From positions 3,224,001 through 3,288,000 of the forward strand of contig OZ218961.1 in the NCBI GenBank assembly GCA_965112735.1: a DNA stretch of 64,000 nucleotides, given 5' to 3'. Shown piece after piece: positions 7,956 through 58,217 of this stretch. The translations under genes were made by a program, and so were the position numbers. Origin of the DNA: Phaeosaccion multiseriatum. Taxonomy: Eukaryota; Protista; Ochrophyta, other classes. Each line of letters begins with the position of its first letter. Within the stretch, counting starts at the first letter, position 1. The notes beneath the pieces were generated by a model. That model was not told the DNA's origin, ran no database searches, and saw only the letters and a list, made by a program, of their open reading frames with translations.

Positions 7956-8655
7956 TCATTCGCAGTTGAGTAGGCCCTTGAACCTGTGAGTAGTGTGCGA
8001 GAGGCGAGAGGGAGCAAGAGGGCGGACGGAGGAAGGAGAATGCGGCGCGGCGCAAGCGGTGCGTCCGGTAAGAGACCGTACCACACACAAAGAGTACACA
8101 TTCATTTCATGTCAGCCCATGCCTACACACTCAACGCCGTGCACAAAAGCCATGGAATGGAACAGTCTCCCCCCCCCCTGCGCTCCCCCTCCTCACCCCC
8201 CTGCCTGCTCTGACCTGTCCGTCATCATGAGCGGGTTGGCGAGCTCCCTGCAGATCTCCTTGGTGAGCACGATGGGAGTGTGCAGCCCCGACCCCTTGCT
8301 GTGCCGGCCCACCCCCGCCTTGCCGAGCGGACTGAGGGGTGAAGGCATGCGACGCCCCTCCAGTCCCACCACTGTCACCACACGCGGGCTGCTTAGGCCT
8401 GGGCCCCGGCCGTAGGAGGGCTGAGGAGAGGAAGGGCACGAGTAAGGGCTACAGCAGCTGCTGTTGGCACTGGAGCTCTTTCTCCGCCGTCCAGGACTTT
8501 TGCTGGCCCGCCTGCTGCTGCCGCCGGTGCTGCTCCCCCTCGATGCGGCACCTCCTCTTGTGCCTGCTTTCTCTGCTCTCGGCCGCGCCCTCGTTGTTCG
8601 CTCCTCGCGCGTCTCAGGCCTTTCGCTACGAACACTCCACTGGCCTGGACCCAAG

Positions 8656-8703
<48 letters not shown>

Positions 8704-9030
8704 ATCACCAACTGCTGCTGCTGCGTGTCGTCGTTCAGAGGGCCCTCAGCAGCGTCGAGGCTGAGGGGCTGCGGCTCTCCCGCTGGCCCTCCTCCTGCTC
8801 CTGCTCCTGCTGCTCCTGCTCCTTTCCCTCTTTCTCGTGCTTCTTTCTCTGCATGTCCTTCACTGCTCTGCTGCTGCCCCTGCGCTCCCCCCCCCGGGGA
8901 GTCGCCCCCCTGGGCCTGCTGCAGCACGAGCTCCGAGGGGTTACGAAGGATGGACAGAGAGGCGGAGGGGTTGAGAAGGATGGACAAAGGCGCACCCACG
9001 CTCACGCCCGGGGCTGCTGCTGTATCACCA

Positions 9031-9062
<32 letters not shown>

Positions 9063-10073
9063 CTCACCGCTGACCAGGGACGTGTTCTCTGATGCTACTT
9101 GTCTGTTCTGCTCCACCTCCACCACCATGGGAAGGGTAGGCTCCGAGACCATGGAGTCCTCGCCACTCAGTCCTCCCGTTGATGTTACTCCTACGGCTGC
9201 TGCTGATGATGATGCTGCTTCTCCTGCACCTTCTTCGAGTGCGGCCGGCAAGACCGCAATGGTCAGCTGCGGTAGGGGTGGGCACTGCTCGGGAGGAGGA
9301 AGCGTGCCCTCCCCAACCTCGCCATCCTCCCCCTCCTCCCCCTCCTCCCGACCAAGGTCAACGCGGGCAACATTGCTGGCGCCCTCCTTTCCTGCCATCT
9401 CCTCCCCCCCGAAGCGCTCCTCCTTCTCCCGCGTAGGAGCACTCGCAGTCTCGAGGCGGAAGCCCTCCTCCTTGTCCCCCCCCCGATAGTGCTCCACCAC
9501 CTGCACGACTTGTTGGTGGCTCGCCAAGCCCTTGAACTGCTGCCGACCCATCTCGAGCACGTCCGCGAGGACCGTCCCGTACGAGGCTCCCGCCTCCATG
9601 ACGGGTCTCGCTCGCTTCCTCTTGGCAGCGTCGAGCTTGGCCGTGGACACGCTGACAGCCAACTCCCCGGAGATGGGGTGGTCGGTGGTGGGGGCGATCC
9701 ACGTCAGCCCAACGCGGTCCTGGAGAAGCCACGCGTCGTCGCGGCCCTTCTTGGCGATGCGCGCCCGCCCCAGCAGAGCCCTCTCCTGCGTGCCCACCTC
9801 CTTGGCGGCGGGGCCCTGCAGCAGCTGCGCCGTCTTCAGGTGCATCTCCTCGAGGTTTCCAAACTCACCGGAGGAGAGAGGGTGGGCGAAGGCGCGAGTG
9901 ATCGTCTGCGTGCCCACGCCGCCCTTGCTGCTTCTGCCCCCCGCCCTCCCAAAGCCGTGTGTAAAGCCCGGCAAGAGAGGGCCGGGGCTTAGCCTCAGGA
10001 TATGTCTGGCATTGTACAGAGGCGCGTCCAAGGGGACCACACGCTCCCCCGTACCACTCTTGGTGGGATCCAT
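7956..10073 (-). CDS. Hypothetical protein (~630 aa) with a possibly globular N-terminal third and an acidic/Q/S-rich remainder
   Basis: 626-aa ORF 8193-10073; a likely phase-2 intron 7984-8214 gives a terminal exon 7956-7983 (...MMTDRFKGLLNCE*). Confidence 0.65.
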
Positions 10074-10250
10074 GATGGCAGCAGTGGCCGCTACCGGAAG
10101 GTTCAGTTCGGATGAGTGAGTTGCGGGGGAAAAGGAGAAAACTCACGGTTTCGTCGTCGCCAACCCCGGCGTCAAAAGGGACATCGGGTGCCGTCCGCCG
10201 TCCATCCAAAAAGTCGTTACGTTTCTGGGATAGGATTGGCAAAAACAAGC

Positions 10251-10391
10251 GGACGTCCCAAGGACGCGTCGGGGTGTTCGGACGTCCCGGGACGTCCGAG
10301 CGGCGCCCGTCCGAGGCACGTACATTAGACGGGTCGTGCTTTGGCCGAGAACGCGTGCGGACGTCCCCCGTACGGGCGCAAGTGGACGTCC
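10251..10391. promoter_or_regulatory. Cluster of five GGACGTCC palindromes upstream of the 10073 start codon
   Basis: Copies at 10251, 10280, 10290, 10359 and 10384; 10278-10299 is a perfect 22-bp palindrome. The regulatory role is inferred. Confidence 0.45.
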
Positions 10392-10521
10392 CGTGGGCGT
10401 GTGCGTGGGCCGGGCGGCGGAGGGGCGTGAAGCCGAGAACAGCGGGCGCGGTGTCTGGTTGGGTTTGGATAATACATTGACTTTCAAAACAATACACAGC
10501 GGTTGTGTACGTCCCACTATA

Positions 10522-10617
10522 CTACCTGCTAGTATCGCCGGCTGCTTCCAGCCGGCGTGCTATCTGCTACCAGCCGGCTTCAGGCGACGTGCTACCTGCT
10601 ACCAGCCGGCGGCCAGT
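10522..10617 (-). repeat. GGTAGCAGGTAGCA-type intergenic element, copy 1
   Basis: Repeated TGCTA(C/T)CTGCTACCAGCCGGC units; the reverse complement of 10590-10617 matches 36462-36489 at 26/28. Confidence 0.7.
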
Positions 10618-10863
10618 GGCGTGTTACTGGGCCCTGCGGGCCCGGTAGATATTGAAAGGAAAATTCAATTAAATATCTACTGGAACACCAACTGGATGGA
10701 ACCCGACAGGCATCCGACAACCGACCAACCTTCTGCTGCCGCCCCCCCTCCCCAGCTTCTACAGTTGTATGCCTCCTCCCTTCTGCCCGCCCGCCGTGTA
10801 TGTACACACCGCCTCCCGCGCACTCACGAGGTGACACTCTCACCCCTCTGAATATATAGTATC

Positions 10864-12021
10864 TCAATTGCCCTGTGCATTTGAGTTTGCGTGGCGGCTG
10901 GGCGCGGCCTGCACAAGTGGGGCGGCGCTCCCCGACTTGGTGTTGATCTCGTTCATCTCCTTGACGGGCTGCGAGAAGTCTCCCATCACACTCTGGGCCT
11001 GCGCGGCGGCAGCAGGGGCGTTGTTAACCTCCTTGGCCTTGCTGCTGCTGACCTCGCCTTTTCCGCCCTTGCCCCCCCCCACGAGCTTGAGCACAGTGGC
11101 CTCGATGTGGCCGGTGCTGAGGCCGGCCTCCTCGTACTGCTCCGTCTGCGTACCCGCCTCGATGAAGCCCTCGGGCAGCACCATGGGCCGCACCTGACAA
11201 GAGAGGAGAGAGGCACAGAGTAACACACAGGGAGGGAGGGCACACAAGATTGGTTCAGAAGGCGATCGATCGCGACATGACATCACGGAACAAGACAAGA
11301 CGCGGGAGCAAAATCCCCGCCCCCCCACCGGCAAGAGCTGCTCAGGACAGAGTGCAGCAGCGCAGCTTAGAGCAGATGAGAGAGAGAGCGAGAGAGAGAG
11401 AGAGAGAGAGGCATAGCCAAAAGCCCCTATCCCCAGCCCTGCCCATACGCCTTCGCATACGCCTTCCTCCGTGAGCCCCTTTTACCTTGATGCCTCCATC
11501 GTCGAGCAGCCCATCGTGTGCCATGAAGTGAAGCACGTGCTCTCCGAAGCCTCCCACCGTGCCCTCCTCCAGCGTGACCAGCGCCTCGTGCCCCTCTGCA
11601 AGCTCTCGGATCATGTCCTCATCGAGGGGGCGCATGAATCTCGCGTCGGCCACCGTCACGCCCAAGTCGGGATCACTCTCCTCCAAGTGGGCAGCTGCCT
11701 CCTGTTGGGGGGGGGGGGGATTTAGAGGCGTACGGGGAGGAGGACGAGGACGAGGAGGAGGGCAGGGGGTGAGAAAGGTGGACATGGAATGAATCCAATC
11801 CCAAACTCGGCAAGTCTACTTTTTCAATGGACCGTACGCAGTCAGCAGCGGCAGAGCAGCAGCATATGGGCCGGCAGGCAGGCGGCAACGAGCCGAGGTC
11901 GAGCGCGTAGACCACCCCATACGTGGATCACCTACCGTACCACCTCGCCCCCATCCACTGCCATCTACCACCTCGCCCCCCCCCTCCCTGCCGCACACCT
12001 CTGGTCTGCTCCAACCCAACG

Positions 12022-28421: not shown

Positions 28422-28811
28422 GTTTCCCTCTCCCTCCTGGTCACACGCAACCATTACGCAGCTTCTTCTATACTCTCTATACTGCGGTTTTTGCGGCCAT
28501 TGTACAAAAATCTACCTCGCGAGGAGCGCGCGCAAAACCCTATGAAGCTGAAACTGAAACTGACTCTGACCCCACAAATTTGCGCCTGTAACCGCCATCG
28601 TGCTTACCTCAGCGGGGCGTTTGCTTCATTATTTGGCTCTCGCGTGCTGTGCTTTGCAATTGCTTGGGGGGGGGAGAATATGAATGCAAGCGCAAGGGTA
28701 AAGGGCGCAGAGATCTAGGAAGGGAACAAGGCAGATGAGAGAGAAAAGGAGGAAATTCCCGCCTGACGGGCCTTGAGGCTCTCTCTCTCTTTTGCCGGAA
28801 ACTCAAGAAGA

Positions 28812-30779
28812 ATGTCGATGCAGCAATCGCGGCCGGGGGAGAAGCGGGGGCGGAATGTGGGGACTAGCGCGGAGGTTTGGACGGTGTTGGAGCTTCTGGA
28901 GTGGCTAAACGGCCTCCTGCAGCTGTCCGCCATGGATGGGGACGACCCCCTCGTTTCCCTCAAGGAGACGTGCAGCGGCGCCCACTTCTGCGCGGTGCTG
29001 GATGGCATGCTGCCCGGCAAGATGAACATGCGCTCCATCATCTGGGGCAAGAAGGACCAGGTGTTGGAGCAGGAGGCCGCATCCAACTTCCGCAGGCTGG
29101 ACGAGGTGATGCATAGACACGGCCTCGACTGTCCCCTGGACTATAGCACCATGCTTGCTGCAAAGCCTTCCTCGGTGCTGGAGCTGTGGAACTGGTTCAA
29201 GAACACGAGTAACCAGCCCCAGTACGGCCTCCTCAGGGACTACAAGGCCAAGGCAAGGCGGAGGCTATGCAAGAGGAGCAAAATGACCAAAAAGAGGGGC
29301 GACAACCTCTTAGGGAGACCAATAGGAATGCAGCAGCAGCAGCAACAGCAGCAACAGCAGCAACAGCAGCAGCAGCGGGGCCAGGACAAGGGCCAGGGTC
29401 AACAGAGGGGAGACGCTCACAGCGGAAGAAGCCGGAGGCAGCAGCTGCAGCTGACGCAGGAGCTAACGACCAAAGGGGTTCGGAGTATGTCTCACTCGCC
29501 AGTCCCGGGTGCGAGCAGCTTACGGCAGGCGGGCGGGCGGGGCAGGGTGCTGTCCCCCCGAGCGGTCAGCGACTCGCACGCGCCCACAAGGGTCAGGGCC
29601 ACCTTCGGAGCCTTCGAGCAAGGGGTAATAGGCCAGGCCGTGGACGGGGGTGATGGAGAAAAGAAGCAGGGGGAGCGAGGGGAGGAGAAGCGGGAGGAGG
29701 AGGAGGAGGAGGGGAATATGGATGGCAGTTTCGACAGCAGCCGGGACTGGGATGTGACGGGAGAGGGCGGCGGCAAAGCCAGTGCTGTGTCACCCGCCTC
29801 TGTCTCCCCAACCCGGCCTGCCAACTTGCCCAACAGCGGGCGAAGGCGACCAGCTCCCACTTCGCGCGCACACACGCAGCTGGGGCAGAGCAACGGCAGG
29901 CTGGGCCGGAAGGGCGGAGGAGGTGACATGTCTTCGTCAGAGAGGCCAGTGGGAAGAAAGGTAGAGGTGCCTTCGCTGGTGCCGCCGGACGTGGGTCTCA
30001 TGGCCAAGGCTCTGTTAGGGTATCACCCAAAAGTTCCGCATGGGAGTGTGCTGCACACGGAGCTAACAGCGTTGGGCCTCGCGGGGCCCAAACAGGCGCT
30101 AACTGCGCTGGTGCTAGCGGAGGAAGAGGAGGAGGAGGAGAGGGCGGGGCCAGAGATACCGAGGGGGGATGATTATTGCGGAGCGGGGCGAAGGGGGCGA
30201 GAGGAGGAGGAGGCCGGCGGGGAGCCTCAGAAGCAGCAGGTGCGGGGGTTGGTGGTCCAGGCGAAGGGTTTACAGATGGGCATAGTGCAGTCGCAGAGGT
30301 ACCAGTACCAGCAGGAGCACCTTGTTCCTGCCCCGGTCTTGCAGCGGAATCGGCACGGAGGCGGTAACGGCAGGGTTGGGGGAGGAGGAGGAGGAGGAGG
30401 AGGAGGCTCACGGAGTGTTGCCGAGGGGCACGACGAGGCAGGAGGGGGGGGGAGTGGTAAAGCTCTGACTTCAGCTCAGGCCGCGGAGAGGGCGGAGCGG
30501 GAACTGAAGGAGGGCCTGAAGCGGCTCGACAAGGGGTTGCACGAGCGAGGCAGGGGGGCGGACAAGGGGAGGGGCAAAGAGGCAAGGGGAGGGGGAGGGG
30601 GAGGGGGAGGGGGAGGGGGAGGCTCAACAGGGGGCCGCGGCGCCAAGGGCTCGCTGCTCAATACGAAGGGGAGCATGGGCAGTATGGCGAGCATGGGTAG
30701 CAGTAGAGGAAGCATCACAAGCCTCGGGTCGTCGCGGGAGCCTACGCGAGGAGGAGGAGGAGGAGAAGAAGGAGGGTGA
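28812..30779 (+). CDS. Protein with an N-terminal EB1-type calponin-homology domain and a long low-complexity tail
   Basis: ELLEWLNGLLQL...ETCSGAHFCAVLDGMLPGKMNMRSIIW...SNFRRLDEVM...LELWNWFK...DYKAKARR resembles the EB1/RP CH domain. Confidence 0.72.
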   Translation: MSMQQSRPGEKRGRNVGTSAEVWTVLELLEWLNGLLQLSAMDGDDPLVSLKETCSGAHFCAVLDGMLPGKMNMRSIIWGKKDQVLEQEAASNFRRLDEVMHRHGLDCPLDYSTMLAAKPSSVLELWNWFKNTSNQPQYGLLRDYKAKARRRLCKRSKMTKKRGDNLLGRPIGMQQQQQQQQQQQQQQQRGQDKGQGQQRGDAHSGRSRRQQLQLTQELTTKGVRSMSHSPVPGASSLRQAGGRGRVLSPRAVSDSHAPTRVRATFGAFEQGVIGQAVDGGDGEKKQGERGEEKREEEEEEGNMDGSFDSSRDWDVTGEGGGKASAVSPASVSPTRPANLPNSGRRRPAPTSRAHTQLGQSNGRLGRKGGGGDMSSSERPVGRKVEVPSLVPPDVGLMAKALLGYHPKVPHGSVLHTELTALGLAGPKQALTALVLAEEEEEEERAGPEIPRGDDYCGAGRRGREEEEAGGEPQKQQVRGLVVQAKGLQMGIVQSQRYQYQQEHLVPAPVLQRNRHGGGNGRVGGGGGGGGGGSRSVAEGHDEAGGGGSGKALTSAQAAERAERELKEGLKRLDKGLHERGRGADKGRGKEARGGGGGGGGGGGGSTGGRGAKGSLLNTKGSMGSMASMGSSRGSITSLGSSREPTRGGGGGEEGG

Positions 30780-39102: not shown

Positions 39103-39150
<48 letters not shown>

Positions 39151-39890
39151 AAGAGTGAGAGGCGCAGTGAGTCCAGCGAATGGCGTCATGACTGACGCTC
39201 TTCCTCGGTTCTTATTCGTAGCTCACTCACGCGTACACAAGTCGCTCAGGCATCTGCATCTCACGCAAACACGCCCCCGGCAGTGTGACACGCCCACACA
39301 TCCACCCTCACTACCTCCCTCCCTCCCTCACTCCCTCACTCTCCTCGTACTCACTCACGCACGTGGTCACTCATACACCTCACTCACCCACGCACCTACG
39401 CACCCACTCAACCACCTAAACACGCGCGCACCCACCCATCCACCCATGCTACACGCAAGTGTCGGCCCCATGCACGCCTGCGGTTTTGCTCTAGGCCGCT
39501 AGGCCGCTAGGCCTTCGGTCGATCTAGGCCTAGGCCGGCGGCCTATATAGCCCGCCTCTAGGCAGCCTCCCAGTGACCGTGGGCGCGTGCGTGGTGCCGC
39601 CCAGCCAGTGGGTAGCAGCGTAGCAGCACACCTGTAGGTCTGCACTCCTCGTAGGGCCAGCGAGACAACACGAACTAAGTCTACTCCTCACTTCCAATCC
39701 CATGCAATGAAATTGACTACTCTTTGCACTTTGGGCACTCCCACCGTCGCTAAAAAGGAATTTGAAGACATGCAGCAGTTGTCATCCGCGGCCATCTGTG
39801 AGGCGGTGGTCTGGCCCTGCTCTGCGCCTCTTTCCTCCTCCTTTCCACCCTGCCCGTACACCCCGCCCGGAGAACTCGCTGTATGCTCGG

Positions 39891-42731
39891 ATGAGGAGAC
39901 CATACAGTAGTAGCAGAAGCGGGGGAAGAAGGCATAGGTACGGGAGGCGGCGGAGAGCTCCTGGTGGAAGAGATGCTCCGTCTGGCGCAGCCCCAGCCCC
40001 TGCCTGTGGTGTCGCTCCAGCGTATCTGGCAGCCTTCCACGCCACGGCGCGCCAGCGGTGCTTGTCAAGCGGGTGGGGTGTAACTATCGGGGTGAGGAGT
40101 ACCAGTGGGGGGGCTTGTTTCTCAACAAGTAGTATCCCCCCTGCTGAGGACGAGGAGGGGGTCCCAGCGCCCTCGTTGTGGCTCGCGACACTGGAGCGTT
40201 TGGAGGCCGCGCGGGAGGCCAGGGACTGGGAGAGAGTGCGCGGCGAGTGGGAGGCGGCGGTGCGGTCGCCACTGCCCATTGACGCGCCTCTTCTCGACAC
40301 AGTCGTGGAGGCTTTGGGCCACTGCGGCCGATGGGAAGAGACGCTTGGATTGCTGAGGGAGATCCAGACGCAGAAGTACGGAGCGTTGATACCACACGTT
40401 GCCCACTACAATGCCGCCATTAACGCCTGCGGTCGGGCTCGGAGATACGATGAAGCCATGGATCTCCTTCGGGAGATGCCTGTAGTGGGATTGCAGCCGG
40501 ACTGCCGAACGTACTCGGCTGCGATTGTGGCGTGTGGCTTCGCGGGGAGGGCAGACCAGGCACTGCAGCTTCTCAAGGACATGCAAGCACAGGGCCTTCC
40601 ACCCGACAATCGCAATTTGAGCGCCGCTATCGCCGCTGTGGGTAGAGCTGGCCAGCCTGAAGAAGCGCTGCGGCTGCTGGAAAGAGTACCCGAGTACGGC
40701 TTGGAGGCCGATGCCGGCAACTTCGAGGCCGCCATCCAGGTGTGCAGTCGGGCGGGATGGTTGGACGCGGCATGGGACCTGTGGGAGGAGGTGCTGGCAG
40801 GAGACATGGTCCTGGATGTGTACCTGTACTCTGCGGCCTTGAGTCTCTGTGTCGCGTCGAGGAGATGGGACAGGGCTTTGGAGCTGCTGAGGGGCATGGA
40901 AGGGGAAGGCGTCATACCCAATCGATACCACTATAGTATTGCGATGGATGCCTGCATCAAGAGCGGGGAGTACGACAAACCTCTGGAGCTGCTAAAGAGT
41001 ATGAAGAAGGAGGGACCCGCTCCGAATGTAGTGAGCTACAACACTGCCATTAATGCATGTGCCAAGGCCGGTCGACACGTGGAAGCGTTGAGGTTGTTGA
41101 GGGAGATGAAGGAAGGAGGACCCGCTCCGGATGTAAGGAGCTACAACGCCGCCATTGATGCATGCGCCAAGGCCGGTGAACACGTGGAAGCGTTGAGGTT
41201 GTTGAGGGAGATGAAGGAAGAAGGACCCGCTCCGGATGTAAGGAGCTACAACACGGCCATTGATGCATGCGCCAAGGCCGGTGAACACGTGGAAGCGTTG
41301 AGGTTGTTGAGGGAGATGAAGGAAGGAGGACCCGCTCCGGATGTAAGGAGCTACAACACGGCCATTGATGCATGCGCCAAGGCCGGTCGACACGTGGAGG
41401 CATTGGGGTTGTTGAGGGAGATGAAGGAGGGAGGGCCCGCTCCGAATGTAGTGAGCTACACCGCCGCCATTGATGCATGCGCCAAGGCCGGTGAACACGT
41501 GGAAGCGTTGAGGTTGTTGAGGGAGATGAAGGAAGAAGGACCCGCTCCGGATGTAAGGAGCTACAACACGGCCATTGATGCATGCGCCAAGGCCGGTGAA
41601 CACGTGGAAGCGTTGAGGTTGTTGAAGGAGATGAAGGAAGGAGGACCCGCTCCGGATGTAAGGAGCTACAACACGGCCATTGATGCATGCGCCAAGGCCG
41701 GTCGACACGTGGAGGCATTGGGGTTGTTGAGGGAGATGAAGGAAGGAGGGCCCGCTCCGAATGTAGTGAGCTACACCGCCGCCATTGATGCATGCGCCAA
41801 GGCCGGTGAACACGTGGAAGCGTTGAGCTTGTTGAAGGAGATGAAGGAAGAAGGACCCGCTCCGAATGTAAGGAGCTACGCCGCCGCCATTAATGCATGT
41901 GCCAAGGGTGGTCAGTACATGGAGGCGTTGGGGTTGTTGAGGGAGATGAAGGAGGGAGGACCCGCTCCGAATGAAGTGAGCTACAATGCTGCCATTGATG
42001 CATGCGCCAAGGCCGGTCGACACGTGGATGCGTTGAGGTTGCTGAGGGAGATGAAGGAAGAAGGACCCGCTCCGAATGAAGTGAGCTACGCCGCCGCCAT
42101 TAATGCATGCGCCAAGGCCGGTCAATACATGGAGGCGTTGAGGTTGTTGAGAGAGAGAAAGGAAGAAGGACCCGCTCCGAACGTAAGGAGCTACAACGCT
42201 GCTATTAACGCATGCGCCAAGGCCGGTCGACACGTGGATGCGTTGGGGTTGTTGGGGGAGATGAAGGAGGGAGGACCATCTCCGGATGAAGTGAGCTATA
42301 ATGCTGCCATTCATGCGTGCGCCAATGCTTGTCAGCACTTGGAGGCGTTGGGGCTCTTCAGGGAGATGAAGGCTGAAGGACTGGTTCCGGACTCAGTCAC
42401 CTATACCGTCACCATTGACGCTTTGCAGGAAGGCGGCGACGAGGAGGCTGCTGACGAGGTGTACGCAGAGGCCGTGTCGCTGGGGATGTTTAAACATTGG
42501 GTGGTACCGGGGACGGACATGGACTTGACACGCTTTGGCAAGGGAGTGGGCAAGGCAGCGCTTCGTCACGTGCATTCAGAGGCGAAGGTGGAGAGTGTGA
42601 TCAACGTCATCACAGGCAGAGGAAGGCTGCCCGCGGTGCTGGCCTACTTGCAGGAGAGAGCAGGAGTCGAAGTGTGGGAAGACAAACACCACCCCGGGAG
42701 AGTGGTGATGCGAGTCGCTGGTACGAAGTAG
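39891..42731 (+). CDS. PPR-SMR protein, paralog 1 (intronless; ~7 divergent + 13 near-identical + 1 terminal PPR; C-terminal Smr-like domain)
   Basis: 35-aa repeats VxSY(N/T/A)xAIDACAKAG...MKExGPAP(D/N); C-terminus DMDLTRF...VINVITGRG...HPGRVVM; Arg/Ser-rich N-terminus resembling a mitochondrial presequence. Confidence 0.92.
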   Translation: MRRPYSSSRSGGRRHRYGRRRRAPGGRDAPSGAAPAPACGVAPAYLAAFHATARQRCLSSGWGVTIGVRSTSGGACFSTSSIPPAEDEEGVPAPSLWLATLERLEAAREARDWERVRGEWEAAVRSPLPIDAPLLDTVVEALGHCGRWEETLGLLREIQTQKYGALIPHVAHYNAAINACGRARRYDEAMDLLREMPVVGLQPDCRTYSAAIVACGFAGRADQALQLLKDMQAQGLPPDNRNLSAAIAAVGRAGQPEEALRLLERVPEYGLEADAGNFEAAIQVCSRAGWLDAAWDLWEEVLAGDMVLDVYLYSAALSLCVASRRWDRALELLRGMEGEGVIPNRYHYSIAMDACIKSGEYDKPLELLKSMKKEGPAPNVVSYNTAINACAKAGRHVEALRLLREMKEGGPAPDVRSYNAAIDACAKAGEHVEALRLLREMKEEGPAPDVRSYNTAIDACAKAGEHVEALRLLREMKEGGPAPDVRSYNTAIDACAKAGRHVEALGLLREMKEGGPAPNVVSYTAAIDACAKAGEHVEALRLLREMKEEGPAPDVRSYNTAIDACAKAGEHVEALRLLKEMKEGGPAPDVRSYNTAIDACAKAGRHVEALGLLREMKEGGPAPNVVSYTAAIDACAKAGEHVEALSLLKEMKEEGPAPNVRSYAAAINACAKGGQYMEALGLLREMKEGGPAPNEVSYNAAIDACAKAGRHVDALRLLREMKEEGPAPNEVSYAAAINACAKAGQYMEALRLLRERKEEGPAPNVRSYNAAINACAKAGRHVDALGLLGEMKEGGPSPDEVSYNAAIHACANACQHLEALGLFREMKAEGLVPDSVTYTVTIDALQEGGDEEAADEVYAEAVSLGMFKHWVVPGTDMDLTRFGKGVGKAALRHVHSEAKVESVINVITGRGRLPAVLAYLQERAGVEVWEDKHHPGRVVMRVAGTK
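41028..42392 (+). repeat. 13 x 105-bp coding tandem array (PPR)
   Basis: Exact 105-bp period with near-identical units. Confidence 0.97.
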
Positions 42732-43382
42732 AACTGGAGATAAGCCCTTTCACAACAATATATCCAGTGTTTTTGTTTTTATTTTACATGTCACAGCAGC
42801 TTCAACCTGATGTGACGCTCTCTGCCTGTGTGACCTCAACACGGCTGATGGCGAAGATTGCCCGGCCTTCCTCACTTTATTCAGCTGTTTCTCTCCAAAG
42901 TAGGTGGCGGAGCAGGCGGTGTAGACGGGTGCAGTGCTGTCGGTGTCGATGGTGTCAGCGCTCTACGGGCCAGCTTTGCCTCCACCCTCGCATGCTCGAC
43001 TATCAATTCCTTGCTGACGCGATTAAAGACGCGAAGAAGTTCCGTTTTCCCTGCACAACCTTCGCCAGCGTCAGCGCATCGGGAGCCGACACAAGAGCCG
43101 AGCACAAGGATGCGAGTCTCGCTTCGCTCGAGGTCTATTAATTCGGCGAGGACGCATCGCGCAGGGCGGCGAGAACTGCACGGCAAGCGACAGGATCGGC
43201 GGGGTCGAGGCGCCCGTGCTTGCTGGGGACGTTGGCCAGGCGCTGAGGCGTCACTAAAGCGAGCACTTTGTACCGCGCCGCCAAACCAAGGGAACATCAC
43301 GTGTTGGTACTCCACAGCCCATTTGAGCTAATGGCGCTGGCCTTAATAGAGCTAATACGTCGTACGATTGTTTGCTCTTCAG

Positions 43383-46328
43383 ATGAGGAGAGTATGCAGC
43401 AGCAGTAGAAGCGGGGGGAGGAGGCACAGGTACGGGAAGCAGCGGATAGCTCTTGGTGGAAGAGATGCTCCATCTGGTGCAGCCCCAGCCCCTGCCTGTG
43501 CTATCACTCAAGCGTATCTGGCAGCCTTCCACGCCACGGCGCGCCAGCGGTGCTTGTCAAGCGGGTGGGGTGTAACTATCGGGGTGAGGAGTACCAGTGG
43601 GGGGGCTTGTTTCTCAACAAGTAGTATCCCCCCTGCTGAGGACGAGGAGGGGGTCCCAGCGCCCTCGTTGTGGCTCGCGACACTGGAGCGTTTGGAGGCC
43701 GCGCGGGAGGCCAGGGACTGGGAGAGAGTGCGCGGCGAGTGGGAGGCGGCGGTGCGGTCGCCACTGCCCATTGACGCGCCTCTTCTCGACACAATCGTGG
43801 AGGCTTTCGGCCACTGCGGCCGATGGGAAGAGACGCTTGGATTGCTGAGGGAGATCCAGACGCAGAAGTACGGAGCGTTGATACCACACGTTGCCCACTA
43901 CAATGCCGCCATTGACGCCTGCGGTCGGGCTCGGAGATACGATGAAGCCATGGATCTCCTTCGGGAGATGCCTGTAGTGGGATTGCAGCCGGACTGCCGA
44001 ACGTACTCGGCAGCGATTGTGGCGTGTGGTTTCGGGGGGAGGGCAGACCAGGCACTGCAGCTTCTTAGGGACATGCAAGCGCAGGGGCTTCCACCCGACA
44101 ATCGCAATTTGAGCGCCGCAATCGCCGCTGTGGGTAGAGCTGGCCAGCCTGAAGAAGCGCTGCGGCTGCTGGAAAGAGTACCCGAGTACGGCTTGGAGGC
44201 CCATGCCGGCAACTTCGCTGCCGCCATCGAGGTGTGCCGTCGGGCGGGATGGTTGGACGCGGCATGGGACCTGTGGGACGAGGTGGTGGCAGGAGACATG
44301 GTCCTGGATGCGTACCTGTACTCTGCGGCCTTGCGTCTCTGTGTCGCGTCGAGGAGATGGGACAGAGCTTTGGAGCTGCTGAGGGGCATGGAAGGGGAAG
44401 GCGTCATACCCGATCGATACCACTATAGTATAGCGATGGATGCCTGCATCAAGAGCGGGGAGTACGACAAACCTCTGGAGCTGCTAAAGAGTATGAAGAA
44501 GGAGGGACCCGCTCCGAATGTAGTGAGCTACAACGCTGCCATTAATGCATGTGCCAAGGCCGGTCGACACGTGGAGGCGTTGGGGTTGTTGAAGGAGATG
44601 AAGGAAGAAGGACTCCCTCCGAATGTAGTGAGCTACAACACTGCCATTGATGCATGCGCCAAGGCCAGTCGACACGTGGAGGCATTGGGGTTGTTGAGGG
44701 AGATGAAGGAGGGAGGGCCCGCTCCGAATGTAGTGAGCTACACCGCCGCCATTGATGCATGCGCCAAGGCCGGTGAACACGTGGAAGCGTTGAGGTTGTT
44801 GAGGGAGATGAAGGAAGGAGAACCCGCTCCGGATGTAAGGAGCTACAACGCTGCTATTAACGCATGCGCCAAGGCCGGTCGACACGTGGAGGCATTGGGG
44901 TTGTTGAAGGAGATGAAGGAAGAAGGACTCCCTCCGGATGTAAGGAGCTACAACACGGCCATTGATGCATGCGCCAAGGCCGGTCGACACGTGGAGGCGT
45001 TGGGGTTGTTGAAGGAGATGAAGGAAGAAGGACTCCCTCCGAATGTAGTGAGCTACAACGCTGCCATTGATGCATGCGCCAAGGCCGGTCGACACGTGGA
45101 GGCGTTGAGCTTGTTGAGGGAGATGAAGGAAGGAGGACCCGCTCCGGATATAGTGAGCTACAACGCTGCCATTGATGCATGCGCCAAGGCCGGTCGACAC
45201 GTGGAGGCGTTGAGGTTGTTGAGGGAGATGAAGGAAGGAGGACCCGCTCCGGATGTAAGGAGCTACAACACGGCCATTGATGCATACGCCAAGGTCGGTC
45301 GACACGTGGAGGCATTGAGGTTGCTGAGGGAGATGAAGGAAGAAGGACCCGCTCCGGATGTAAGGAGCTACAACACTGCCATTGATGCATGCGCCAAGGC
45401 CAGTCGACACGTGGAGGCATTGGGGTTGTTGAGGGAGATGAAGGAGGGAGGGCCCGCTCCGAATGTAGTGAGCTACACCGCCGCCATTGATGCATGCGCC
45501 AAGGCCGGTGAACACGTGGAAGCGTTGAGGTTGTTGAAGGAGATGAAGGAAGAAGGACCCGCTCCGAATGTAAGGAGCTACGCCGCCGCCATTAATGCAT
45601 GTGCCAAGGGTGGTCAGTACATGGAGGCGTTGGGGTTGTTGAGGGAGATGAAGGAGGGAGGGCCCGCTCCGAATGTAGTGAGCTACACCGCCGCCATTGA
45701 TGCATGCGCCAAGGCCGGTGAACACGTGGAAGCGTTGAGGTTGTTGAGGGAGATGAAGGAAGGAGGACCCGCTCCGGATGTAAGGAGCTACAACACGGCC
45801 AATGATGCATGCGCCAAGGCCGGTCGACACGTGGAGGCATTGAGGTTGCTGAGGGAGATGAAGGAAGAAGGACCCGCTCCGGATGTAAGGAGCTACACCG
45901 CCGCGATTGATGCATGCGCCAAGGCCGGTCAGTACATGGAGGCGTTGAGGTTGTTGAGGGAGATGAAGGAAGAAGGACTGGTTCCGGACTCAGTCACCTA
46001 CACCGTCACCATTGACGCTTTGCAGGAAGGCGGCGACGAGGAGGCTGCTGACGAGGTGTACGCAGAGGCCGTGTCGTGGGGGGTGTTCAAACATTGGGTG
46101 GGGCTGGGGACGGACGTGGAGTTAAGACGCTTCGGCATGGGAGTGGGCAAGGCAGCGCTTCGTCACGTGCATTCAGAGGCGAAGGTGGAGAGTGTGATCA
46201 ACGTCATCACAGGCAGAGGAAGGCTGCCCGCGGTGCTGGCCTACTTGCAGGAGAGAGCAGGAGTCGAAGTGTGGGAAGACAAACACCACCCCGGGAGAGT
46301 GGTGATGCGAGTCGCTGGTACGAAGTAG
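43383..46328 (+). CDS. PPR-SMR protein, paralog 2 (intronless; 14 near-identical repeats)
   Basis: Near-identical to paralog 1 outside the array and exactly 105 bp longer. Confidence 0.92.
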   Translation: MRRVCSSSRSGGRRHRYGKQRIALGGRDAPSGAAPAPACAITQAYLAAFHATARQRCLSSGWGVTIGVRSTSGGACFSTSSIPPAEDEEGVPAPSLWLATLERLEAAREARDWERVRGEWEAAVRSPLPIDAPLLDTIVEAFGHCGRWEETLGLLREIQTQKYGALIPHVAHYNAAIDACGRARRYDEAMDLLREMPVVGLQPDCRTYSAAIVACGFGGRADQALQLLRDMQAQGLPPDNRNLSAAIAAVGRAGQPEEALRLLERVPEYGLEAHAGNFAAAIEVCRRAGWLDAAWDLWDEVVAGDMVLDAYLYSAALRLCVASRRWDRALELLRGMEGEGVIPDRYHYSIAMDACIKSGEYDKPLELLKSMKKEGPAPNVVSYNAAINACAKAGRHVEALGLLKEMKEEGLPPNVVSYNTAIDACAKASRHVEALGLLREMKEGGPAPNVVSYTAAIDACAKAGEHVEALRLLREMKEGEPAPDVRSYNAAINACAKAGRHVEALGLLKEMKEEGLPPDVRSYNTAIDACAKAGRHVEALGLLKEMKEEGLPPNVVSYNAAIDACAKAGRHVEALSLLREMKEGGPAPDIVSYNAAIDACAKAGRHVEALRLLREMKEGGPAPDVRSYNTAIDAYAKVGRHVEALRLLREMKEEGPAPDVRSYNTAIDACAKASRHVEALGLLREMKEGGPAPNVVSYTAAIDACAKAGEHVEALRLLKEMKEEGPAPNVRSYAAAINACAKGGQYMEALGLLREMKEGGPAPNVVSYTAAIDACAKAGEHVEALRLLREMKEGGPAPDVRSYNTANDACAKAGRHVEALRLLREMKEEGPAPDVRSYTAAIDACAKAGQYMEALRLLREMKEEGLVPDSVTYTVTIDALQEGGDEEAADEVYAEAVSWGVFKHWVGLGTDVELRRFGMGVGKAALRHVHSEAKVESVINVITGRGRLPAVLAYLQERAGVEVWEDKHHPGRVVMRVAGTK
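44520..45989 (+). repeat. 14 x 105-bp coding tandem array (PPR)
   Basis: Exact 105-bp period; unit order differs from the first array. Confidence 0.97.
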
Positions 46329-47061
46329 AATTAGAGGTCGTGGGTTTGGAGGGCAAGGAGGCAATGAGAGCAGCCCTGAGACTAGCGGAGCGGGGAAGGG
46401 GATGAGCAGAGGCAGTGACAACAGCAGAGAGAAGCTGAGACAACTGACAACTCCACCGCAGCGCCTGCCCACCCCGGACGCATCACGGCACTTCACGGCC
46501 AAGTGTATTTTCCCATCGCAAGAAGGAGGTAGCGGCAAGAGCCAGGCAGGTGGACAATCTTGCCCTGTTGCCTGTGGACGGCAGCTGGAGCTGAAGTTGG
46601 ACGGACAAGAGGGGGTGGTGCTTCCCTGCCTTTATTGCCAGCAGGAGCAGTTACGGCAGAGCTAGACGGGAATCGTTTCCCCAGCAGGGATAACAGAAGG
46701 AGCGAACCGTTCTGATGGACTTGGAACCCATTCTGTGGGTAGCGGGGCTGACCTTGTAAGCTCCTCAGTCACCCGCTACAACCACCATCCGTGTGGGTAC
46801 TCGTTGCAGTGTGTCGAAATCACGTCTCGAGCTTGTACGACCAACTCGTCCTCCTCAAGTGCTGTGTGTGGGGGGGAAGATGCTGCGGTACCATTTTATA
46901 TATATTGTATACAATTGCGAGTGAGATTCGTTCTCGAGGGCTCTTAGAAACGAACCCGAACCCAAACCTCCCCGCCACGGGTGGCGGGGCTCCCACTCAT
47001 GACCTACCCCTGCTTGTCTGCCTGTTTGCCTGCCCGATGTCCTGCTTATCAACCATCTCTC

Positions 47062-47470
47062 TTATCTATTGGCCCTGGCCTGTATGTTGCTGGCGACGGC
47101 GCTACCGATGAGCAACTGGAGGGGGTGTATGATGAGCAGCGGGGTGGTGAGCAGGCCGAGGTGAGGGCTTCCCTCGAACATTGTGGTGAGGAGGGGGATG
47201 CCCAGCGCAAGTGTCTTATGAGAGCCCGCAAACAGCAGAGCGATGCGGTCCTCGCGGGCAAGCTGTGAAATGGGGGTGTAGGGTAGGGTATCGGAGGGTA
47301 TCGGGCATACAAAGGGATAGGGGTGGTGAGCTGAGAGAGGGGCGATCCGGGCATATGGGGCACGGCTTGGCATCGATGGTCGGGAGTGTCCTCGCGTTGT
47401 GAGGGCAAGCCGTTACACGTGCAGCCCACCCCTTGGCCAAGACACGCCGAGACAGAGAGGGAGAGAGAGA

Positions 47471-47510
<40 letters not shown>

Positions 47511-49621: not shown

Positions 49622-52570
49622 ATGGCGAGGGGCATAGTGAACCCGTACGGAGGAGGAGGCGCGAGAGGTGGGCGGAGGGGAGGCAGCAGGGACCTCGAGG
49701 CTGGAGCGCTGTTGGGGGCCGAGTGCCCCTCTGTGGACTGCATCAATGCCTGCCAGGTGGGGAGGAGGGGCACCTTCTTCAAGAGGCTCGTTCTGCTCGT
49801 GCTGCTGCTCACAGCCGTGGTGCTCCTTATGGGGGCACACACTGAGATCGCTGATGTGCGCGTGGTGCCCAGCCCTATGCTCTCACGGCAGGAGGAGGAG
49901 GCAGGGGCGGCTGGAGTCGCCGTACTGCACCCTTCCGGGTTGGGGATGAAGGCGCCTACAGATGCGCAGTCTTCTGGCGCCAGACAGCGGGCGAAGGAGA
50001 GCTTCGAGCAGATCACTGAGCCGGCGCACGCACACTTGGAGGAGAGGGAGGCAGACAGGAAGCTCAACATGGACAAGGACAGCAACGCCGAGGAGAGCCT
50101 GCTGCAAAGGCAAAGAGAGGAGGAAGCCGAGGCTATGCAGGAGCATGAAAAGATGCAAGCTCAAGAGCGCATGGAAGCCGAGAAGCAGGCACTGATTGAG
50201 CACGCGGAAGCAGTGAAAGCAGCAGCAGAGCAGGACGAGCAGCAGCTGCGACAGGCACAGGAGGCCGAGGTGCAGGCGCAATCTCAAAGGGAGAGGGAGG
50301 AGGAGGAGCAAAAGCAGGAGCAGCAGCAGGCAGAAATGGTTCGGAGGAAGAAGCAGAAGGCAGAGGAGGAAGAGGAGGAGGAAAAGGGGCGCCAAGAGGC
50401 AGAGAAGCGCCGACAGAAGCAGAAGGAAGAGGCCAAGGCGGAGCTGGAGGCAGAGGCATCACGCGCCCTGGCAGAGCGTGAGCAGCGCAAGAGGGACGAG
50501 GAACAGCAGCAGGAGCAGGCCCGGAAGGCCGTGGAGGTGGCCCTCGCCGCGGCAGCAGCTCAAGAGGCCGCAAAAGAATCGGCAGAGGTGGCTCCACCGC
50601 AGAGAGAGGAGGAAGAAGCACAAGCACCACCGAGCCCCCCCTCACCACAGCCAGAGGTCAGCGGCAGCAGTGAGTCCATGCCCTCAGCCCTGTCCTCGGG
50701 CTTGTCCTCGGCTCTGGCGGGCAAGTTGGCGCTGTGGCTGAGGGCCGACGAAGGAGTGGAGGCGGACCCCTCCACCGGCGCTGTACTGCGCTGGAGAGAC
50801 ATGTCGGGCCGGGGCAGGCACTTCTCGCCCCCTGCCAGTACGGCGCTCAGAGCACAGGGCCTCTCCAAGCTCGCAGACGAGGTCAGAGACTTTCGGGACG
50901 AGCACGGGGTGCCCGCCATTGGAGAAGGGCTGCCCCCCGGGGTCAAGTCGCTCCTGGCCGAGCTGGTCACGCAGGGCAAGGCCCAAGGCGGGCAGGTCCC
51001 GGGGGGGGTGGCGGAGGGGCCCCTCTTGGAGGATATGGGCAGGGTGGCCCCGGGGGGGAGGCGCCGACTGCCGCTGGTGCGCTTCCCCGGGGGGCCGCTG
51101 GTGTGCTCCGACGCCTCTCTCGTGCTGCAGAGGGACGGAATGACGCTCTTCTTCGCGCTGGCACCCCACCTCCTCGCAGACGGGGACCACGCCCCCGGCC
51201 AGCGCTTCTTCGGTACGTACCCGAGTGGGCAGTTTCGCTTCCGAGACGGGCTACCCGGTCTCAAGCTCGGCAAGCAAGACTACACGCTGCCTGCCACGGC
51301 CCGAGCAGAGGAGGGAGGGCTCCGAGCCGAGATGGAGGTGCGCCACGGAAGGCACATGCACGACGAGGCCGTCTTCTCACAACTGGCGTACCGCCTGGAC
51401 GCACAAGGCGTGCACATGTCCAGAGACGGCGCGGCGTGGCAGGAGGCGTTGTCGAGGATGGGGCAGGCGGCACCCCCTCTCTCGGCCTCCGGCGGCGGCG
51501 GTAACGGCGGTGGGGGCTTCTCAGAGCGTGTGGCCGTCGTGCTCGGGGGTGCGCAGATCAGCGGGGGGGGCTTCCTGGGGGATGTGGGGGAGGTGCTCGT
51601 GTTCGACTCCGCGCTCCCAGATGGCGATGCTCGGGCGGTACAGGCCTACCTCGCGGACAAGTGGGGGACCACCCTACAGGGCGGAGCGTGGCATGGGGCA
51701 GGGGGAGGGGAGGAGGAGGGGAAGGAGAAGAGGGGGGTGAGGGAGGTGGGAGAGGCTGCTGCTTTGGCTCTAGGGGGGGCACAAGAGGGACAGGAGGTCC
51801 AGGAGCAAGCACGGAGGAAGGAACAGGAGGGCCCAGGGGTGGACGCCGAGGTGCCCCTTGGGATTGGCGGGGGGAAGCACGACAAGGTAGCAGCCCCCGG
51901 GGTGGCAGAGGGTGTCCGAGTCGGGGAGGAGGCGGACGAGGCGGAGATTCACCTGAGCAGGAGGGAGAAGCAATACCTGCGGCAGCAGAAGGCCAAGGAC
52001 GAGCAGAAGAAGCAGACCCAGCAGCAGCGGGAGGAACACGAGGCGAGGGAGGAGGAGGACAAGAAGCGGCGAGCGCGAGAAGAAGAGGAGGAGCGGCGGC
52101 AGCACCAAGAGAGCGAGGCCTTGGACAAGAAGGAGCGAAAGAAGAAGGGGCAGGGCAACAAGAACAAGCCCGATGTGCCCCCTTCCAAGCACCACATAGG
52201 CTCACCAGACGCCCGGCACCGGCACCAGGGCGCAGCAGGGGCAGCAGGGGCAGCAGGAGGAGCGAAAGCACACGACAGCGACGCCTCGAACCCTGCACCC
52301 CCACTCCCCGCAGACAAAGTGGAGGCAGCCGCAGCAGTTGGTGATACAGCGGGCGAGGAGGGAGGGTGCGTGGTGGACGACGATGCCCGCGTGGAGAACT
52401 GGAAGCCACCCCCTGGCGCCGCCCTTCGGCCCAAGCTGCAGTGGACAGACGAGCAGGCCGCCTCCATGGGGCGCATCCGGGCCTTCGAGAAGGGCGGCAA
52501 GCAGCTCAAGGACCTCATCCACGCTGAAGTCACGCGTCTCAAGATACTTCGGCACGACCTCTTCTGCTAA
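49622..52570 (+). CDS. Type II membrane protein with coiled coils and a LamG/concanavalin-like domain, intronless
   Basis: TM segment LVLLVLLLTAVVLLM; LALWLRADEGV...VLRWRDMSGRGRHF...FLGDVGEVLVFDSAL...VQAYLADKWG. Confidence 0.72.
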   Translation: MARGIVNPYGGGGARGGRRGGSRDLEAGALLGAECPSVDCINACQVGRRGTFFKRLVLLVLLLTAVVLLMGAHTEIADVRVVPSPMLSRQEEEAGAAGVAVLHPSGLGMKAPTDAQSSGARQRAKESFEQITEPAHAHLEEREADRKLNMDKDSNAEESLLQRQREEEAEAMQEHEKMQAQERMEAEKQALIEHAEAVKAAAEQDEQQLRQAQEAEVQAQSQREREEEEQKQEQQQAEMVRRKKQKAEEEEEEEKGRQEAEKRRQKQKEEAKAELEAEASRALAEREQRKRDEEQQQEQARKAVEVALAAAAAQEAAKESAEVAPPQREEEEAQAPPSPPSPQPEVSGSSESMPSALSSGLSSALAGKLALWLRADEGVEADPSTGAVLRWRDMSGRGRHFSPPASTALRAQGLSKLADEVRDFRDEHGVPAIGEGLPPGVKSLLAELVTQGKAQGGQVPGGVAEGPLLEDMGRVAPGGRRRLPLVRFPGGPLVCSDASLVLQRDGMTLFFALAPHLLADGDHAPGQRFFGTYPSGQFRFRDGLPGLKLGKQDYTLPATARAEEGGLRAEMEVRHGRHMHDEAVFSQLAYRLDAQGVHMSRDGAAWQEALSRMGQAAPPLSASGGGGNGGGGFSERVAVVLGGAQISGGGFLGDVGEVLVFDSALPDGDARAVQAYLADKWGTTLQGGAWHGAGGGEEEGKEKRGVREVGEAAALALGGAQEGQEVQEQARRKEQEGPGVDAEVPLGIGGGKHDKVAAPGVAEGVRVGEEADEAEIHLSRREKQYLRQQKAKDEQKKQTQQQREEHEAREEEDKKRRAREEEEERRQHQESEALDKKERKKKGQGNKNKPDVPPSKHHIGSPDARHRHQGAAGAAGAAGGAKAHDSDASNPAPPLPADKVEAAAAVGDTAGEEGGCVVDDDARVENWKPPPGAALRPKLQWTDEQAASMGRIRAFEKGGKQLKDLIHAEVTRLKILRHDLFC

Positions 52571-57716: not shown

Positions 57717-58217
57717 AAGCTCCCCAATGTCATTCTTCTCCACGGACGGCCATATCACATCGAGAATACCCGAACCCGTCCGATCTCGGAAGTCAAGCGA
57801 TGTCGAGCCGATTTAGTACTACGGTGGGGGACCACGTGGGAATCGTCGGTGCTGTCTGTTTTTTGCTGGCGAGAAGGAGCTTGGGACATAACTGGAAGGG
57901 CGGGGCGAGAGAGATTGGCTCCTGTTTTTTTTTCCTATGAATAGGTGTGCGTCGTGTGATCGAAGGAAGGCAGTGGAAGGCTACTGATGCCATCTGTGGA
58001 GCTCTGCGGGCAAGAGCACAGAGGGGGGAGACTTTCCCGTGTTGACAGCCCCCTATTGGCCCACGTGCTTCTCCTCTCCTCTCCTCTCCTCTCCTCTGCT
58101 CTCCTCTCCTCTCCTCTGCTCTGCTCTCCTCTCCTCTCCTCTCCTCTCCTCCCGTCCCCTCCCCGGCATCCACTGCCATCCACTGCCATCCACTGCCACC
58201 CTCCCCTCCCGCAGCCC

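Follow-up and report, generated by a model that had tools for sequence, protein, structure and literature searches.

Two adjacent genes of the ochrophyte alga Phaeosaccion multiseriatum carry arrays of almost identical pentatricopeptide repeats (PPRs) that evolve in concert by unequal crossover and gene conversion, faster than the remainder of the genes. The pair lies on the forward strand of a 64,000-nucleotide stretch of contig OZ218961.1 (assembly GCA_965112735.1, positions 3,224,001 to 3,288,000), referred to here as the window; coordinates below are window positions. The two are probably nuclear paralogues from a lineage-specific, multi-copy gene family for P-class PPR proteins that end in a reduced Smr-fold domain. 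The original prediction for this DNA was a recombination-programmable RNA-targeting system. Its recombination component is supported, while a programmable nuclease system is doubtful, being weakened by losses in the tail motifs.

Near-identical PPR units in two tandem genes

The open reading frames (ORFs) and arrays were found where they had been placed, as an intronless gene pair with a shared block of about seven diverged PPRs followed by 13 and 14 units of 105 bp, respectively. From N- to C-terminus, both proteins consist of an Arg-rich N-terminus, the diverged block, the array, one further diverged PPR and a 77-amino-acid tail. Tandem Repeats Finder (TRF) delimited the period-105 arrays at 41001-42372 (13.1 copies, 87% matches, no indels) and 44493-45978 (14.2 copies, 88% matches). 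The Pfam models PF13041, PF01535 and PF12854 matched 14-17 stretches per protein with scores of 394-632 bits, and the PPR register is constant at 35 amino acids.

Mean pairwise DNA identity among the 27 units is 87.7%, with a mean of 12.8 differences between units of different genes versus 14.1 and 12.1 within the genes. The uniformity of these arrays is far beyond that of ordinary PPR proteins. Comparing each protein with itself shifted by 35 residues (lag-35 identity) gave 0.83 and 0.81 over the best 350 amino acids; among 130 related PPR proteins of at least 500 amino acids the median was 0.23 and the highest value 0.71. Synonymous diversity among units is 0.19 and nonsynonymous diversity 0.10 (pN/pS 0.55). 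Because synonymous diversity is this low, the likeness of the units reflects shared DNA ancestry, through duplication and conversion, and not convergence of the proteins. Twelve amino-acid positions of the unit are invariant and several of these vary synonymously, which indicates that the unit scaffold is under purifying selection in addition to homogenisation at the DNA level. Fairly uniform PPR arrays were also observed in the dinoflagellates Durusdinium trenchii (P0018, lag-35 identity 0.71) and Polarella glacialis (P0032, 0.60); PPR repeat homogenisation therefore occurs in other algal lineages.

The order of the units differs between the genes. When units with no more than 4 differences were assigned to one type, gene 1 read a-b-b-c-d-b-c-d-e-f-g-h-i and gene 2 read j-c-d-k-l-m-m-n-c-d-e-d-n-o. 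At this threshold 3/15 types are common to both genes, so the earlier description of a largely shared pool of variants was generous. The c-d motif occurs twice in each gene, and only c-d-e is colinear between the arrays (A07-A09 with B09-B11). Other unit pairs at the same offset have 7-19 differences, and units in register are no closer than random pairs. Gene 1 also contains an internal three-unit duplication, in which A03-05 resembles A06-08.

Exchange has taken place within units as well as between them. All four gametes were present at 160/300 informative site pairs of the unit alignment, at least nine recombination events (Rm) are required within its 105 nt, and thirds of units recur in differing combinations. 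In A04, for example, the first third is exactly that of A03, A06 and B05, the middle third that of A07 and B04, and the last third that of B02, B09 and B11. These results support the exchange among homogenised units put forward in the original prediction.

Outside the arrays, coding identity between the genes is 96.3% in the N-terminal part, which includes the diverged PPR block, and 95.9% in the C-terminal part. For these parts the synonymous divergence (dS) is 0.064 and the ratio of nonsynonymous to synonymous divergence (dN/dS) is 0.48. They are mosaic too: a dS of 0.30 over the initial 43 codons gives way to a mismatch-free tract of 283 nt (p ~0.001 at the mean divergence of 3.7%), beyond which dS is 0.036. 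Similarity extends over 39887-42733 and 43379-46330, starting 4 nt ahead of the ATG and ending 2 nt past the stop codon; the final 190 bases up to the stop are identical and are followed by unrelated sequence. No blastn similarity between the genes was found outside the coding sequence (CDS), and global alignments of the flanks gave 56-58% identity. Similarity confined to the CDS fits either conversion limited to coding DNA or the copying of cassettes that consist of the CDS only.

In the mechanism that we propose, unequal crossover and gene conversion, with breakpoints within and between the 105-bp units, would hold the units at about 88% identity. The same events would alter unit number and order, so that the paralogues diverge in their predicted RNA code. 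Such a change of code would be a by-product of repeat dynamics, which selection may or may not exploit.

Table 1. Coordinates of the two genes and their parts in the window.
Feature	Position	Strand	Evidence or remarks
Gene 1, single-exon CDS including stop	39891..42731	+	946 amino acids; ORF 39762-42731, first ATG 39891
Gene 1, presequence-like N-terminus, first 85 amino acids	39891..40145	+	Residue composition
Gene 1, putative recent conversion tract, 283 nt mismatch-free against gene 2 (43511-43793)	40019..40301	+	Gene 1/gene 2 alignment; recent conversion likely
Gene 1, block of about seven diverged PPRs (amino acids 135-379)	40293..41027	+	Register listing; Pfam PPR matches
Gene 1, array of 13 near-identical 105-bp PPR units, A01-A13	41028..42392	+	TRF, unit listing, distance matrix
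Units A07-A09, sole block colinear with gene 2 (B09-B11, 45360-45674)	41658..41972	+	3, 1 and 1 differences per 105 nt
Gene 1, final diverged PPR	42393..42497	+	Matches designer-PPR chains in the PDB; modelled as two helices
Gene 1, shortened Smr-fold tail, MDLT ... TGRG	42498..42728	+	Family profile, structure model, fold search
Intergenic spacer, 651 bp	42732..43382		Unrelated to the other flanks
Gene 2, single-exon CDS including stop	43383..46328	+	981 amino acids; ORF 43368-46328, first ATG 43383
Gene 2, block of about seven diverged PPRs	43785..44519	+	Register listing
Gene 2, array of 14 near-identical 105-bp PPR units, B01-B14	44520..45989	+	TRF, unit listing, distance matrix
Gene 2, final diverged PPR and shortened Smr-fold tail, VELR ... 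TGRG	45990..46325	+	Alignment to gene 1 and relatives

On the opposite strand, ORFs of 448 codons span both arrays (40992-42338 and 44484-45830, minus strand). They were rejected as genes and are a by-product of the stop-free repeated units.

Predicted RNA code of the arrays

Residues 5 and 35 of a PPR together specify the bound base: T or S with N reads A, T or S with D reads G, N with D reads U, and N with N reads C or U. In gene 1 the successive pairs are ND ND ND NN TD ND NN TN AN NN AN ND ND, and in gene 2 they are NN NN TD ND NN ND ND ND NN TN AN TD ND TD. The unit listing reproduced exactly both these pairs and the V/R alternation at position 2 that had been reported. Position 5 is N or T in 24/27 units and an unusual A in the other 3, and position 35 is D or N in 27/27. 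Applying the code returned the pyrimidine-rich target strings of the original prediction. The predicted strings are mostly U/Y and have a low information content.

The variation among units was then compared across positions. Ranked by amino-acid entropy, the most variable positions are 16, 22, 5, 33, 9, 2, 30, 35, 25 and 6, which places positions 2, 5 and 35 sixth, third and eighth of 35. Codons 2, 5 and 35 have a pN of 0.30 and a pS of 0.20 (ratio ~1.5), compared with 0.084 and 0.187 (0.45) for the other codons. These three positions contribute 25% of the nonsynonymous diversity, and 75% lies elsewhere. The triple 2+5+35 is enriched (p=0.006; 0.6% of random triples do as well), with position 2 chosen post hoc, while the pair 5+35, chosen a priori, is not significantly enriched (p=0.11). 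On the suggested check the code positions thus stand out only in part. Recombination makes formal site tests unreliable on these units.

Position 35 covaries with position 2 of the next unit (D followed by R in 11 cases, N followed by V in 11, with 7 exceptions; Fisher p=0.009), so position 2 is not an independent toggle. The covariation could be due to physical linkage, the two codons being 6 bases apart, or to a contact between D and R of neighbouring repeats. T at position 5 is tied to one unit type (TAAIDACAKAGEHV) in 5/6 cases, so code diversity comes mainly from the shuffling of a few unit types. The claim that crossover and conversion among homogenised units generate new specificities in a TALE-like way holds for homogenisation, for exchange and for the differing predicted codes. 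It fails for a TALE-like mode in the strict sense, given that variation at positions 16, 22, 33, 9, 30, 25 and 6 is as large as that at 5, 2 and 35.

Tail, targeting and alternative explanations

The tail is not recognised by standard domain searches. The Pfam Smr model (PF01713) gave no match to it at E values up to 10, and a single-sequence search of the PDB with the tail did not find Smr. HMMER, run against the whole protein library with the 112-amino-acid C-terminal segment, returned nine weak matches, which are enough for an alignment (A1) and do not amount to a deep family. One relative, P0013, has a sub-threshold Smr match (18.4 bits versus a cut-off of 25.7). The profile made from the alignment, which holds the two tails and six relatives, matched the SMR region of plant pTAC2/PAP2 (E=5e-5) and the Smr domain of NEDD4BP2 (E 0.06-0.16).

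An AlphaFold2 model of the gene 1 tail had a predicted local distance difference test score (pLDDT) of 88.1 and a predicted template modelling score (pTM) of 0.81. When this model was searched against 48,161 chains (VIA), the seven best matches were all Smr domains: pTAC2 chains from two entries (Z 11.0 and 9.7), the Smr domain of T. thermophilus MutS2 (Z 8.9, root-mean-square deviation 1.7 over 71 residues), and SmrB, B3BP, YdaL and human Smr (Z about 7). Foldseek also gave Smr, with weak E values of 0.014-0.2. The tail as modelled adopts an Smr fold. Its description as Smr-like is thus upheld by profile and fold and is not matched by Pfam recognition.

The motifs of the domain are partly lost. 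At the LDxH site, where the relatives in the alignment have DLH or DFH, gene 1 reads MDLT and gene 2 VELR; the His is missing from both genes and the Asp also from gene 2. TGRG is kept in both, and the ~11 residues that directly follow it in all six aligned relatives are absent. SOT1 has LDVR at the first site yet cuts RNA. Cleavage of RNA by that protein requires TGXG, and cleavage of DNA requires LDXH (PMC6662315). DLH supplies catalytic residues in SmrB, and B. subtilis MutS2, with DLR, binds to collided ribosomes but does not cut (PMC10897456). The loss of the LDxH His and of the residues after TGRG weakens the reading of the tail as a re-aimable nuclease. Judged by these motifs, the tail could be a nuclease, though this is doubtful, and docking is no less likely a role; it would more probably serve as a binding or docking module, or as a weak nuclease, than as a robust nuclease of the SOT1 type.

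The first 85 amino acids contain 12-14 Arg/Lys and 1 acidic residue (14 Arg/Lys versus 1 Asp/Glu in gene 1), and no hydrophobic stretch was found within the first 30 (maximum hydropathy -1.65 in gene 1). This N-terminus appears to resemble a mitochondrial presequence and not the bipartite leader, headed by a signal peptide, that directs proteins to secondary plastids. Each protein probably enters an organelle, more likely the mitochondrion, where its ~21-22 repeats would bind single-stranded, pyrimidine-rich RNA. The bound organellar transcript would then be stabilised, processed or translationally controlled. The architecture, the uniformity of the arrays, the signatures of recombination, the Smr fold and the motif losses are established by the analysis; that the proteins bind RNA, enter an organelle and use their tail as proposed is predicted.

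We consider it reasonably likely that the family is a concertedly evolving, probably mitochondrial PPR(-Smr) family and an extreme analogue of the plant Rf-like (RFL) PPR clusters. Several points weigh against this reading. The antisense strand of the arrays is open as well, so open frames across the repeats are weak evidence of function. The reads over the window come from five runs and two samples, all as short-read contigs and none recorded as RNA, which bears on expression. Organelle targeting was judged from composition only, a dN/dS of ~0.5 allows relaxed constraint, and the retained TGRG is compatible with RNA cleavage by the tail.

The last point belongs to the idea of a diversifying, recombination-programmable family of RNA-targeting nucleases, favoured by selection for yielding new specificities against fast-changing targets such as selfish mitochondrial ORFs, mobile elements or RNA viruses; the target would be recognised by the PPR array and cleaved by the Smr tail. 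Unit order and number do differ between paralogues that are otherwise 96% identical, pN exceeds pS at codons 2, 5 and 35 (0.30 versus 0.20) with enrichment of the triple (p=0.006), TGRG is the motif needed by SOT1 to cleave RNA (PMC6662315), and plant RFL clusters act in this way (PMC5075784). Three quarters of the nonsynonymous diversity (75%) nevertheless lie off the code positions, the pair 5+35 is not enriched (p=0.11), position 2 follows the preceding position 35 (p=0.009), and the codes are mostly U/Y and of low information. Together with the lost LDxH His and the deletion of ~11 residues after TGRG, these observations make this explanation unlikely. A nuclear-organelle arms race of the Rf type in a stramenopile-type alga is in our judgement rather unlikely. 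In it, unequal crossover and conversion below the unit level among homogenised natural 'designer' PPRs would keep supplying new RNA-binding codes, and selection would favour those suited to silencing or processing new mitochondrial or other selfish transcripts; the reduced Smr tail would then be an effector or docking module.

A recently amplified family that drifts neutrally or decays, as a coding minisatellite with little or no specific function and a relic tail, would account for the non-repeat dN/dS of ~0.5, for Smr motifs that are degenerate (more so in gene 2) and for similarity that stops at the CDS, with unrelated promoter regions. Against it, 946 and 981 codons have stayed open, including 491 non-repeat codons in each gene, scaffold positions are invariant as protein and variable at synonymous sites, dN/dS is well below 1, and the tail is still predicted with confidence to fold as Smr (pLDDT 88). 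We regard decay, too, as rather improbable.

Mis-assembly of unit number, unit order or the tandem arrangement from multi-copy repeats was also considered. Short-read contigs break within the arrays and leave the units unphased; two thirds of the placed contigs fit two positions, and there are odd joints of low depth. Four runs from the two samples nevertheless cover every bin of the window, and the end of gene 1, the spacer and the start of gene 2 are spanned without differences by unique contigs (43239-43507 for the spacer and gene 2 start). Both frames are intact, and the arrays are clearly different and not collapsed copies. An artefact is in our view very improbable.

Genomic context and comparison with known systems

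Contigs of the N-terminal domain (40655-40786 and 43602-43756) reached depths of 2375 and 2845 in run X3, about 4-5x the ~600-630 of unique sequence, which suggests that further near-identical copies of the subfamily lie elsewhere in the genome. Depth differences between the two samples are too unreliable to interpret. Within the 64-kb window tblastn found no further family member. The best protein matches come from stramenopiles and dinoflagellates at 30-48% identity (no public protein exceeds 48%), the best named ones being from Chrysoparadoxa australica, Scytosiphon, Ectocarpus, Chattonella and dinoflagellates; land-plant proteins reach 23-33%.

The neighbouring genes are ordinary and include a PUB domain, a glucosidase II beta-like protein, a CCT motif and parts of a flavodoxin/FAD reductase. 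Tried as taxonomic markers, a 622-amino-acid PRKCSH-like ORF and a CPR-like ORF (the latter in an Atlas search) yielded no match. The host DNA is rich in guanine and cytosine (GC), and GC content is even along the window. A mobile-element or viral island was rejected in view of these neighbours and the even composition. (GA)n microsatellites at 39103-39161 and 47449-47509 bracket the gene pair, the first ~730 bp ahead of gene 1 and the second 1.1 kb past gene 2, and C/A-rich low-complexity repeats lie at 39293-39452. The sole Rfam match in the window is a full-length 5S ribosomal RNA gene at 57742-57860 on the plus strand (RF00001, 107.9 bits). ORFs without a Pfam match occur at 49622-52567 (plus strand, 982 codons), 28773-30776 (668 codons) and 8193-10070 (625 codons).

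Similar arrays were encountered on a metagenome contig (L001) that has 34% GC, looks bacterial and is rich in IS630/DDE transposases. It carries two genes for 546-amino-acid proteins (2922-4562, minus strand; 10001-11641, plus strand) with eight near-identical PPR units each. The units vary at positions 5 and 35, and the proteins have an Smr-like end (LNLH ... ITGF). They may be PPR-SMR proteins of a host-associated bacterium. A PPR-SMR protein has been reported for Legionella longbeachae, and those of heterokont algae have been mentioned in passing (PMC3858433). No account of algal PPR or PPR-SMR arrays with homogenised units turned up in the literature searched.

To our knowledge, the repeats of natural PPR proteins are normally strongly diverged from one another, and arrays as uniform as these have so far been a mark of engineered consensus PPRs. 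The designer and consensus PPRs (dPPR, cPPR) likewise consist of near-identical, consensus-like 35-amino-acid units that differ mainly at a few positions. They are also the best sequence matches in the PDB, with ~63% identity to a dPPR10 unit over 30 residues. The units described here differ from them in being natural and in varying also at ~7 non-code positions.

The Chlamydomonas NCL proteins (OPR-RAP) and the TALEs resemble the present pair in having repeats that are read as a code, clustered or fast-evolving genes, and specificities that change by recombination. They belong to other repeat families (OPR in NCL; TALEs bind DNA). TALE repeats vary almost exclusively at the two specificity residues, whereas three quarters of the variation lie elsewhere in the present units.

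Plant PPR-SMR proteins (SOT1/PPR53, GUN1, pTAC2/PAP2, SVR7) share the order of a PPR tract followed by a C-terminal Smr domain with TGxG, and the pTAC2 chains are the closest solved structures to the modelled tail. The tail of the Phaeosaccion proteins is shorter, has no Pfam Smr match and carries MDLT or VELR in place of LDxH. The repeats of these proteins are homogenised and the genes multi-copy, whereas plants have few, conserved orthologues. The algal proteins are, in addition, probably mitochondrial and not plastidial, and endonuclease activity has been demonstrated for SOT1.

A close parallel is with the plant RFL clusters, which are tandem, mostly intronless P-class PPR genes with 15-20 repeats and mitochondria-targeted products. 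In rice, unequal crossover and conversion move single PPR motifs among RFL genes, feed new specificities and produce chimeric genes (PMC5075784). The analogy drawn in the original prediction is apt. Repeats within an RFL protein are well diverged, unlike the ~88% DNA identity found here, and an Smr tail is absent from RFL proteins. Selection for diversity at the code positions, established in RFL genes, is no more than suggested for the present pair. Because identity to land-plant proteins does not exceed ~33%, the family is an analogue of RFL and not a member of that clade, and the likeness is one of mode of evolution only.

A natural family of homogenised PPRs would show concerted evolution re-ordering an RNA-recognition code, a counterpart beyond plants to the Rf-like clusters, and would supply builders of programmable RNA-binding proteins with natural scaffolds and Smr variants. 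The value of the present locus is limited, its nuclease-type end being degenerate. The feature is real and unusual and not unprecedented: an extreme, concertedly evolving form of PPR gene cluster whose Smr tail is reduced.

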